Part shown: in pieces, positions 32,301-35,300 of the stretch
How positions within the stretch are numbered: position 1 is the stretch's first letter
Layout of the letters: each line of letters opens with the position of its first letter
Source of the DNA: Dimorphilus gyrociliatus
Lineage: Eukaryota > Animalia > Annelida
DNA length: 64,000 nucleotides
Assembly (NCBI GenBank): GCA_904063045.1
Contig: CAJFCJ010000005.1
Span: 2,908,165-2,972,164, forward strand
Reading direction: 5' to 3'
Program-made: the position numbers and the translations under genes
The notes under the pieces: generated by a model
What the model was told of the DNA's origin: nothing
The model's database searches: none
Seen by the model: the letters and a program-made list of their open reading frames with translations, nothing else

Positions 32301-35300
32301 TACTGCCACAAAGGCAATTTATTAAACTAATCTAATTTTACTCCTATAAATATTGAATATAGAAACAGTTTATATTATATTAAAAAAAGAAGAATTATAT
32401 ACCAAGACATCTCTCTATTATGTACTTATATAAGGTATCAGTATAACACAAGAATAAAGAGAATTACTCTGTTTTGCTTTCATTGAATATCGTTTTATAT
32501 TTTATATAACATGTATATATATATATATACTGAATATATTAACTTTAATACAAACCTTGCATGTTGTTGAATTATTATACTTGAATGATTTTGTTTGACC
32601 ATTTTCCAGGAAAACTTTTAAAACGTTTGGCATAAGAGGGACATAGCTTTTGGAATTGGACGGCTGGGGGCGGAGAATAATGGAACAAAAATTTAATTAA
32701 TTGATGCGTCGAACTCTCAGTTAAATAAAAGAGTTGATACTTACAGAAGAATTCAATTTGCCACTACCGTTTTCGGCCTCAGCGAATCGAACTCTTGGTG
32801 GATTTGTCTTTAATCGAGCCTTCTTTGTTGCCGATAGTAAGGCTGATTTGTGGGATCCAGTCTAGAGTTTTTCAACAATAAAGTATATATAAGCAATTTC
32901 TCTAAAAAAATATTCTAAACTATTCAGAATTTAGGTGGTCAACCCTCGAGGGCAGACGTTTGGGTATTTGTTATGAAAATTGTGTTAATCGTTCAGAAAT
33001 TGGTCGACGAATAGTAAGTCACGTATTTTGTTATAGACTAAACTCTGTCAACATTTCACAATTCCCTACTGTAATTACATAAAAACAATTAGAAAGACAC
33101 AAATTACAAGGTTTTGCCCGTAATCCATTTTTAAATACAAACAAAAAACTAACAACTATCCTAGAGTAAAGTAAAGTAAACAAATATATCAACCGGTTTG
33201 TCCTCTTTCAATACCTTATCTCAAAATATATAAACCGTAGTAAATCCAATAATAAAAATAAAGAACCTGCATTTTGTCAGTCGTCAAGATTTGGCTTTTT
33301 TCCTTTTTAGGCCGATGTGACGCTGAAAGTAGACGGTTTAAAGAAAAAAGAGCTTGCTATACCTGCTCCGCCAAGTGGCAGTAACTATTCGCAGCTGCGC
33401 GTTTTTCTACTACAAAGATATATTGGAACCGAACTTTTTTCAGTTTTAAAAGCCTTTATGTTATAAATTATACGGCAAACGCAATCCGCATGTTAATTTT
33501 ATTTACTCTGTGTCCAAGTGCAGGTTTATTCGTTTTGTTTTGAGTATCTATAATAAAATATACCATATAAACTAATGGAATGGACAATACCTATACATGG
33601 AATCATCTAAACGAAACCTACTACCAAATACTATTGGGTTTTCTCGAAAGCGCAAAAAAAAGAAAATTGTTAAAAGAGTCGATAAACAATCGAAACGTTT
33701 GTAATTCTTAGCATATGGTGTAAATTCCTTGAAATTATCTCATTTGAAAGACGCAGCTTCAACAATTACATGAGCAGAATGATCAATTTTAGACCTGTTC
33801 GGATAAGCTAGTGTATAAACATAAACTGGCATGGAACTATTTGACGCAGCATTAATGTGCTGTTTAAATGACGTTAAAGGAGTAACAATAGATGTGTCAT
33901 AAATTTGATGATTTGGTTGCCTCCCAGATTCTAATCGAGGTCCCAAGTAGGCAGTGCTACAACTTTCTCCTTGGTAAACATAGACGATTTTAATCTCCTC
34001 AACAGCTGAATGTTCGTCCAACATTCTCACATAGCAAGCCGTATACCTTGGATCATTTACTTTAATATTTCCCTTTTCATCTTCATATTTCGGCTCTGAG
34101 AAGGTTTTTTCACAATCTCCAAGGATACCGTTTACAGAATAATTTGGACGTTTATGATAACGAAGTCCGGGATATTCAACAGTTATGGGCAAGTTGAATA
34201 AGTTTACTGGGTGAGCTATATTTACGTTGTCTAAAACCCTTGTTAAAATTGCCTTTCTTGGCGAAGGGGATTGGAGAGAAACAGCGTGATTGTCAACTAC
34301 TTCTTTTAATTGCCTACCAACTATTTCCGTTCGAGTAACGATTGTTTGAGCCCGTAAAAAAGCAGGTGCGTATGTTAAAACAACGTGCAGATAAAATGGT
34401 AAAAGATCATCAGGAATATCAACTATGAAACGACCTTGATCTTGAAAACAGATTGCTAAAGAATTCCTCAAACTGATTTCCGGAAAGTTGAGCTCACCAA
34501 TAAAATTTACTTTGCTTTCTCTCTCTTCTGCCTCATCTGTTATGGGTACATTGAATCTTTCAGGACTTTTATTTTGTCCATGTAATGACATTTGCGCCAT
34601 CTTTCGGCAAGGAAGAATTTTCTGCTTGGGACACGATTCCTTTTTCGCAAAGTACTCGAAAGCTTGTAACGAATCAATGAATATTATTTTTCCTTCATCT
34701 TCTATTGCCTCTTTTACTTCCTCGCTATCTTCCTCATCACTCATCTCAAAAAAATTCTGAACTTGCTGACGAGCAAAATCTTCACTCTGTTCCGTCTCTT
34801 GCCTTATCTTGGCTTGTTCCCTTTTCATTCTAGCACGTTTATTTTGAAACCATATATTAACGAATTGCTCCGTTTGATTTAGCTCTTGAGCCAATTTCAA
34901 CTTAGCTGGTCGGCTAGGCCATCTTTCTTCCGCAAATACATCTTCTAGACGTTTTAAAGTTTCCGGTAAGATAACAGTCCTTTTGCGACGTTTCTTACAC
35001 TTTTGAGTCTTAAATATTTTTCGTTTCGATGAGCCCGATTTAAGCATTTTTCCAATTAATAAGATTGATTATCGGAAACGTTCAGTATTCGATAGAAGAA
35101 GATTCTATTCTATTTTTTTTTCAAACCGTGAGAAAATACGAACAAAATAACAATTTTAACGTTTAGAAAGTACGAAAGTATTGTTGAAATATTTTAAACT
35201 ACAAATAAAGGCCATATAAGAAACAAAAAGCATTTTGACTTACAAAAAATACTTTAGATTGTGACTAAATTAAAGAAAATAACTTAATTTCAGCAATTTA

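Follow-up and report, generated by a model that had tools for sequence, protein, structure and literature searches.

Genes that are nested in animals on the same strand as their host are described as lying whole within one enlarged intron, with the host spliced across them normally and the arrangement kept in a relative, and the locus considered here resembles them in these respects. It is part of a stretch of 64,000 nucleotides (nt) from the annelid Dimorphilus gyrociliatus (assembly GCA_904063045.1, contig CAJFCJ010000005.1, positions 2,908,165 to 2,972,164), referred to below as the window, in which an intronless open reading frame (ORF) of 435 codons plus TGA, at 33740..35047 on the minus strand, encodes a homeodomain and is enclosed by a second gene of the same strand. 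This host gene shares the WW-PDZ-FERM order of vertebrate FRMPD4 (Preso), and its FERM exons match the human FRMPD4 FERM domain (7byj). The homeodomain is like those of the PRD class (Paired, Phox2b, Goosecoid, Alx4, DUX4) in having Q50 and Pro26, and the ORF contains no paired box; it is unlike them in having W25-P26-S27 for Y-P-D, I8 for F8 and K52 for R52.

The best overall explanation of the data, and one that we consider probable, is that the ORF is an independent, functional, nested single-exon homeobox gene which, with a homeodomain at its extreme N-terminus, would encode a sequence-specific DNA-binding transcription factor. Its own mRNA would start within the host intron between the PDZ and FERM exons and the protein would be made from its own ATG at 35047, while the WW-PDZ fusion present in the deposited gene model would be an artefact of annotation.

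A constrained homeobox frame in an FRMPD4-like host

The intron, its flanking exons and the region upstream of the ORF are as follows.

35352..35403, minus strand: host exon E5, downstream of the PDZ domain; donor GAAAAG/GTTAGA, phase 0; joints 35555 to 35403 and 35352 to 32861
32862..35351, minus strand: host intron of 2,490 nt, GT..AG, joint 35352 to 32861, contig depth 123
32745..32861, minus strand: host exon E6, 39 codons, phase 0; its acceptor is shared by the E5 donor and a donor at 33267
35048..35351, minus strand: upstream stretch from the E5 donor to the homeobox ATG, about 61% identical between species, with islands TTTCGTACTTT near 35178 and TGTTCGTAT near 35140; presumed promoter and 5' untranslated region (UTR)

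The RNA data are the assembled contigs of one 2017 run (X1), namely 15 contigs, all at least 99% identical to the window and with GT..AG joints in the minus orientation; contig depth is a poor measure by the tool's own warning. In the host they give the joints 35962/35884, 35715/35657, 35555/35403, 35352/32861 and 32745/32663. The joint from 35352 to 32861 skips the 2,490 nt around the ORF, which lies wholly within this intron on the same strand and occupies 53% of it, and thereby supports the same-strand nesting between PDZ and FERM exons that an earlier note on this DNA had proposed from the letters alone. The same note had called the host FRMPD4-like, and this description holds exon by exon, the exons having been searched individually and not as one joined spliced model. 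The PDZ domain is matched by Pfam (E = 1.2e-5), the WW junction is supported by the RNA contigs (GKNYYID/HTTKTT), and three consecutive exons match the human FERM domain uniquely and collinearly at residues 39-84, 81-124 and 124-169 (E = 7.5e-5, 2.6e-9 and 3.1e-7, respectively). The terminal host exon (26361-28628) holds an open frame of 755 amino acids (aa) that is proline- and serine-rich except for its C-terminal end, which is weakly like the talin-like rod segment PF21865 at a score below the cut-off (E = 3.4e-4).

The protein encoded by the ORF can be divided into three parts, listed here with the ratio of the proportions of non-synonymous and synonymous differences (pN/pS) between D. gyrociliatus and a related species.

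34814-34993, minus strand: homeodomain, residues 19-78, with Q50, I8, W25-P26, F44-V45 and K52; Pfam match; pN/pS 0.04
34508..34813, minus strand: linker, residues 79-180, acidic and helical, under the weakest constraint within the protein; helices predicted at low confidence; pN/pS 0.27
33743..34507, minus strand: conserved C-terminal region of 255 aa, residues 181-435; pN/pS 0.12

The start codon is at 35047-35045 and has an A at -3. The homeodomain matches the full length of the 57-position PF00046 profile (E = 5.4e-14; 52.2 bits, with a cut-off of 22.9), and the core residues W48, F49, N51 and R53 as well as L16 and F20 are all present; Q40 accompanies I8, W25 and K52 among its unusual residues. 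There is one full-length copy of the protein in the 78-Mb genome, the next homeodomains being at most 40% identical, and an exact-protein look-up found no record of it in public assemblies. Besides the homeodomain the protein has no Pfam domain. Residues 100-435 (336 aa) retrieved the ortholog only when compared by phmmer with 1.84 billion representative proteins, and residues 150-435 gave no usable match in a feature search of the ESM Atlas. AlphaFold2 models were unusable, with a mean predicted local distance difference test score of 34 for the whole protein and 28 for the tail by itself. Strong constraint and strand-like hydrophobic patterns suggest that the tail is a folded domain, and by analogy with other homeodomain factors it might serve as a partner-binding or regulatory module.

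An ortholog of 436 aa (P0002), 83% identical to the D. gyrociliatus protein, is present in the Logan assemblies of three runs of one related dinophilid species. Its contig (25 kb) is collinear with the window over approximately 14 kb, with the ORF located between the same host exons, and the sole length difference between the two ORFs is one indel of 3 nt, that is, one codon. By the Nei-Gojobori method the whole ORF has 0.096 non-synonymous substitutions per site (dN) and 1.245 synonymous substitutions per site (dS), a ratio of 0.077. Ordinary intron sequence is approximately 50-60% identical between the two species; because silent sites are near saturation and introns are only this similar, the constraint on the protein is real. 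The ORF is thus under strong purifying selection, its nested position is conserved in the sister species, and the nesting is older than the split of the two dinophilids.

The earlier note had described a complete, intronless and divergent homeobox gene of 435 aa with a canonical 60-aa Q50 homeodomain and the unusual residues I8, W25, Q40 and K52, and had named neutral evolution, an error of assembly and lack of transcription as observations that would speak against it. The frame, the Pfam match, the core residues and all four unusual residues are as it described, and the gene is single-copy. The dN/dS ratio of 0.077 is not neutral, no assembly error was found, since three assemblies of a second species, independent of one another, show the same arrangement, and transcription of the region is evident from an RNA contig that covers the ORF.

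Membership in an unnamed homeobox family

Relatives were found by a search with the homeodomain only, followed by a profile search. They include proteins of Owenia fusiformis (CAH1791262.1, P0004), Tubulanus polymorphus (LOC141915386, P0011) and Lytechinus pictus (P0006 and P0008), as well as P0003, P0007, P0009 and P0010, and score 92-99 bits compared with at most 69 bits for the next tier of fungal and Engrailed homeodomains. In an alignment of nine proteins, 18 columns do not vary, I8, P26, F44 and K52 among them. Within D. gyrociliatus, the best match of each of the Owenia, Lytechinus and Tubulanus proteins is this ORF, at 59-64 bits compared with 35-39 bits for the next match, and phylogenetic analysis groups the nine homeodomains in a single clade (support 83/91), found in 80% of bootstrap trees, which for 60 columns is moderate support. 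By these sequence comparisons, D. gyrociliatus has in this ORF its one member of an apparently unnamed homeobox family of annelids, a nemertean and a sea urchin, which spans protostomes and one deuterostome. The labels "TPRX2-like" and "aristaless-related-like" attached to the Lytechinus pictus proteins are automatic best-hit names and do not indicate orthology.

Members of the family have in common a homeodomain located approximately 10-35 residues from the N-terminus, the residues R5-T6-[VI]7-I8, W/F25-P26 and F44, the string WFQNKR[AS]R, and 46-59% identity. A C-terminal motif spanning about 60 aa (...EFD.AV..LYG[IV]K...YDK..GF), common to the relatives from Owenia, Lytechinus and Tubulanus, is not detectable in the Dimorphilus protein; in its place the latter has the conserved 255-aa tail, with homologs only in dinophilids. 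An apparent MAFFT match between the tail and the motif (AHP...F[ND]...) was rejected, the hhalign probability being 0.05. By eye and in unaligned sequences, the motif is not visible in P0003, P0007, P0009 and P0010 either, and it may not be a defining feature of the family. At P0004:205-288, P0006:290-368 and P0011:240-314 it reads L.R.[IM]I.M.A..E......FD.AV...LYG[IV]K......[IT]YD[KR]..GF; no Pfam model covers it, and it may be an undescribed conserved domain.

The earlier note had stated that the homeodomain fits no class. The ambiguity stands, but the homeodomain is not unique, given the relatives in Owenia, Tubulanus, Lytechinus and others. Among the best single-domain matches of the family profile are Paired, Phox2b, Gsc and Alx4, all of PRD type, at 56-62 bits, and the ANTP-class Engrailed-2 and Even-skipped match equally well (59-61 bits), so that only a few bits separate these domains. 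A small tree places the family apart from the PRD-type as well as the ANTP-type paralogs of D. gyrociliatus. The assignment to PRD or ANTP is therefore ambiguous, and Pro26 hints at a PRD-like class. DUX4 was discarded as the closest relative, as its first rank came from the sum of two domains, each scoring 22-25 bits with the single query and about 52 bits with the profile. In the accessible parts of the supplements of two spiralian homeobox classifications (PMC6118893, PMC5322547), the diagnostic strings of the family were not found; the matches to WFQNKRAR or WFQNKRSR contained there (Cg_PRD3, Lg_PRD-VI and a CUT clade) are unrelated. The family may represent an overlooked old bilaterian family with fast-changing C-terminal parts, which would be relevant to homeobox classification.

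Origin of the gene within the intron

The earlier note took the lack of introns as a sign of retroposition. Arrival of the gene in the intron through retroposition of a spliced mRNA would explain why it is intronless and lies in an unrelated host, and it would fit the Owenia relative, whose single intron follows residue ~199 and does not interrupt the homeobox, and which is not nested in a PDZ/FERM gene but located between a kinase gene and a tRNA_edit gene. However, the Owenia intron falls in a region that has no counterpart in Dimorphilus, the gene for P0003 is likewise intronless, so that the family is intron-poor, and D. gyrociliatus has lost many introns genome-wide (PMC7854359). Around the ORF there are no flanking direct repeats (target-site duplications) and no A-tract or other poly(A) remnant, and the D. 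gyrociliatus genome contains no parent copy of the ORF. As any such event preceded the split of the sister species (dS ~1.25), its hallmarks would have decayed. We consider retroposition unlikely. The relocation into the FRMPD4 intron, by whatever mechanism, preceded the dinophilid split.

Transcription of the homeobox region

The ORF is spanned by a contig of 2,143 nt (mean depth 21.8) that covers 35381..33267 unbroken and then splices to 32861; it is 100% identical to the window. Exactly 30 nt of E5 are included at its start, the length of the k-mer overlap at a branch of the graph; from there no splice interrupts it across the upstream stretch of 300 nt, the entire ORF and a further 470 nt, until the donor CAG/GT at 33267/33266 is joined to the acceptor of E6. 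Contigs within the 405-nt intron between this donor and E6 have a depth of 2-5; compared with these, the depth of 21.8 places the ORF region above the pre-mRNA background, as far as so poor a measure can indicate.

No ATG is present in the last ~165 nt before the start of the homeobox ORF. D. gyrociliatus has no operons, spliced leaders or trans-splicing (PMC7854359). From the strong constraint on the ORF, together with the absence of operons and trans-splicing, we infer that the homeobox mRNA probably begins inside the intron of the host and that translation starts at the ATG of the ORF, at 35047.

A conserved block between the ORF and the next host exon

Downstream of the ORF lies a second conserved element.

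33240..33530, minus strand: conserved non-coding block of about 290 nt with AATAAA, TATAAT, a palindrome, an in-frame ATG and a splice donor

The first 200 nt past the stop codon are about 50% identical between the two species, and identity then rises within the block, 33530-33240, to 70-96% per 50-nt window. Among seven 50-nt windows across 33561-33226, six are 70-96% identical and one is 84% identical. Over 33520-33270 the identity is 87%, and the best 100-nt window, at 94%, is as similar as the best of the host's coding exons and more so than the homeobox (85%). The block contains a conserved AATAAA at 33503-33498, while an AATAAA farther upstream, at 33530-33525, is not conserved; it further contains TATAAT at 33472-33467 and the palindrome CGCAGCTGCG, and its end, ...AAAATGCAG/GTTCTTTATTTTTATTAT, includes the donor CAG/GT that is spliced to 32861 in RNA. 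A conserved ATG at 33272-33270 is in frame with E6 in both species (MQ/TGSHKS...); the reading from this ATG-CAG through E6 and the next exon, E7, was translated locally and was not sent to searches. The block is unique in the genome. No Rfam family was found in the intron at E ≤ 1 or in the whole window at gathering scores, and RNAalifold detected no informative covariation in the block, having two sequences only to compare. A CTCF-like motif, TGCCACTTGGCGGAGC, was dropped, as comparison by eye shows mismatches at key positions of the consensus. A second conserved patch, about 77% identical and containing ...CAATTTTCATAACAAATACCCA..., is located at 32935-33034 within the 405-nt intron.

These features lead us to propose, tentatively and with somewhat less than even confidence, that the homeobox mRNA would end at the conserved AATAAA (33503-33498) and that the rest of the block would be an internal promoter and first exon of the host, from which the ATG-CAG would splice in frame to E6 to give a FERM-only isoform. 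Alternatively, the block could act as an enhancer, or it could belong to the homeobox mRNA as a 3'UTR that is spliced and regulated.

Alternative explanations

Several observations weigh against an independent gene with its own mRNA and against this view of the block. No transcription start or poly(A) site was observed, and neither RNA ends nor local depth nor rare junctions can be read from assembled contigs. The single contig over the ORF is continuous with the last 30 nt of E5, and hence some RNA reads through the E5 donor; contigs cannot separate an independent start, linked to E5 by rare unspliced host RNA, from read-through from the host promoter. The upstream 300 nt are poorly conserved and have no obvious promoter. 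As to the block, the internal-promoter interpretation draws on conservation, one joint and an in-frame ATG, and the paucity of ATG in the block is not significant (P = 0.19). Finally, the ortholog has another in-frame AG (AAG/ATA) three codons upstream of the acceptor used by the deposited fusion model, which would permit a chimera through a shifted acceptor.

The joining of two donors to one acceptor allows a broader interpretation, which we regard as quite unlikely, in which the homeobox gene and the host constitute one regulated unit whose output is set by the choice between donors 35352 and 33267, both spliced into E6, with the block of about 290 nt as the switch. If so, the outputs would be the full WW-PDZ-FERM protein, an RNA that cuts the host short after PDZ and carries the homeobox ORF, and, from an internal promoter in the block, a FERM-only isoform from the conserved ATG-CAG.

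A more restrictive scenario is that the ORF has no promoter of its own and is present only on RNAs from the host promoter in which the E5 donor is left unused and 33267 serves as an alternative 5' splice site. The host protein would then be truncated to WW-PDZ, the homeobox ORF would be a downstream cistron, and host truncation and homeobox expression would be coupled. The 2,143-nt contig, running unspliced from E5 through the ORF and then spliced to E6, has the form expected of such an RNA, there is almost no difference between species at donor 33267 and in its flank, and the frame that reads through past E5 stops after 16 codons (at most 20 in the ortholog). However, an ORF of 435 codons at a dN/dS of 0.08 needs efficient translation, which a second cistron behind an ORF of about 190 codons would not get, in a species that has neither trans-splicing nor operons (PMC7854359). 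Moreover, a de Bruijn assembly needs only traces of unspliced pre-mRNA to connect an independent transcript with E5, and the neighbouring intron is indeed represented by contigs at a depth of 2-5. Exclusive dependence on the host promoter is therefore improbable. Host read-through of E5, if real, would yield a WW-PDZ-only product like that imagined in the earlier note.

The deposited model DgyrCDS3778 (CAD5114737.1, 593 aa) fuses the WW and PDZ exons of the host to the homeobox ORF at ...SYEK/TQKC..., and relies on the following site.

35008..35011, minus strand: acceptor of the annotated chimera, AAG/ACT with AG at 35010-35009; purine-rich with a poor polypyrimidine tract, probably no real splice site

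If the annotated chimera were real, E5 would be spliced from its donor at 35352 to this AG, and a WW-PDZ-homeodomain protein would be made, at least as a minor isoform. In addition to the deposited model itself, which belongs to a set of weighted EVM consensus models of Augustus, Exonerate and PASA (PMC7854359) and may thus include transcript evidence through PASA, the scenario is favored by the junction 35352/35008 being in phase 0 and by the in-frame AG of the ortholog mentioned above; the latter, however, is expected by chance in a Lys-rich stretch. The joint from 35352 to 35008 is absent from the RNA contigs, which can miss rare forms, whereas five other host joints are seen in them. The AG itself is not conserved, the sequence being AAG ACT here and AAA ACT in the ortholog, and its tract is poor for an acceptor. 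The ATG and the first 12 codons, which would belong to the intron, stay in frame in both species with largely synonymous change (approximately 6.5 synonymous and 4.5 non-synonymous differences); 5 of the first 13 codons of the ORF differ only synonymously, and both species have the A at -3. DgyrCDS3778 is further mis-spliced at the WW exon (35884-35962, 35925-35865), where it reads intron while the RNA joint from 35962 to 35884 gives a canonical WW domain. None of the eight family relatives has a PDZ domain (0/8), and the homeodomain is near the N-terminus in all of them. DgyrCDS3778 is not mentioned in the supplements of the genome paper (PMC7854359). We conclude that the WW-PDZ-homeodomain fusion is probably an annotation artefact and that a real chimera is improbable.

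The earlier note had raised a PDZ-homeodomain chimera as a speculation. The chimera corresponds to the official model, but it finds no RNA joint, the ortholog lacks an AG at that position and the codons that precede it show coding conservation. The two splice sites that the note named are present as described, AAG/ACT in phase and GAAAAG/GTTAGA, although the latter is the normal donor of the host and not an alternative one. The likely false fusion and the mis-spliced WW domain in the deposited protein would mislead counts of homeobox genes, of domain architectures and of gene fusions.

The possibility of a chance open frame, of a pseudogene or of an assembly artefact is refuted, as an open frame of 435 codons in DNA with a GC content of 33% is under strong purifying selection, recurs in the same arrangement in three second-species assemblies and is matched by an RNA contig at 100% identity.

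Neighbouring features

Three GT..AG RNA joints on the plus strand (36128-36210, 36385-36514 and 36434-36515), antisense to the host, are placed between the annotated first exon of the host (36829-36767) and the WW exon, and suggest a spliced plus-strand transcript with two alternative donors that overlaps the 5' region of the host. Three stretches 5' of the host coding exons (37050-37250, 38350-38800 and 36550-36700) are 91-99% identical to the sister species, with 99% at 37200-37101. Their longest ORFs do not exceed about 70 aa, and Rfam gave no match; UTR exons, an unannotated RNA or conserved non-coding elements are possible identities. Farther upstream on the minus strand, the neighbour at 39055-40117 (L013 3344-4351) is like the MBOAT family, as judged from the Pfam MBOAT match of ORFs on the ortholog contig; the ORF at 39944-40117 contains ...WHGFYPGYY..., and the order of the MBOAT-like gene and the host is kept in the sister species.

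Comparison with known nested genes

The nested transcription-factor gene is real and ordinary in kind. Three points stand out, namely the likely false fusion in the reference annotation, the membership in an apparently unnamed family with a replaced C-terminus, and the conserved block tied to a host exon, the last of which is new here. The nesting has been stable across a divergence at which silent sites are saturated, beside a block that is conserved like coding exons and spliced to the host, and the locus represents a compact and tractable case of how a same-strand nested gene and its host share one intron. Unlike in typical same-strand nested genes, the deposited annotation here fuses the nested gene with the host, and the RNA that bears the ORF joins the next exon of the host through a highly conserved donor. 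Because of this joining, the nested and host units are not cleanly separate in the available RNA.

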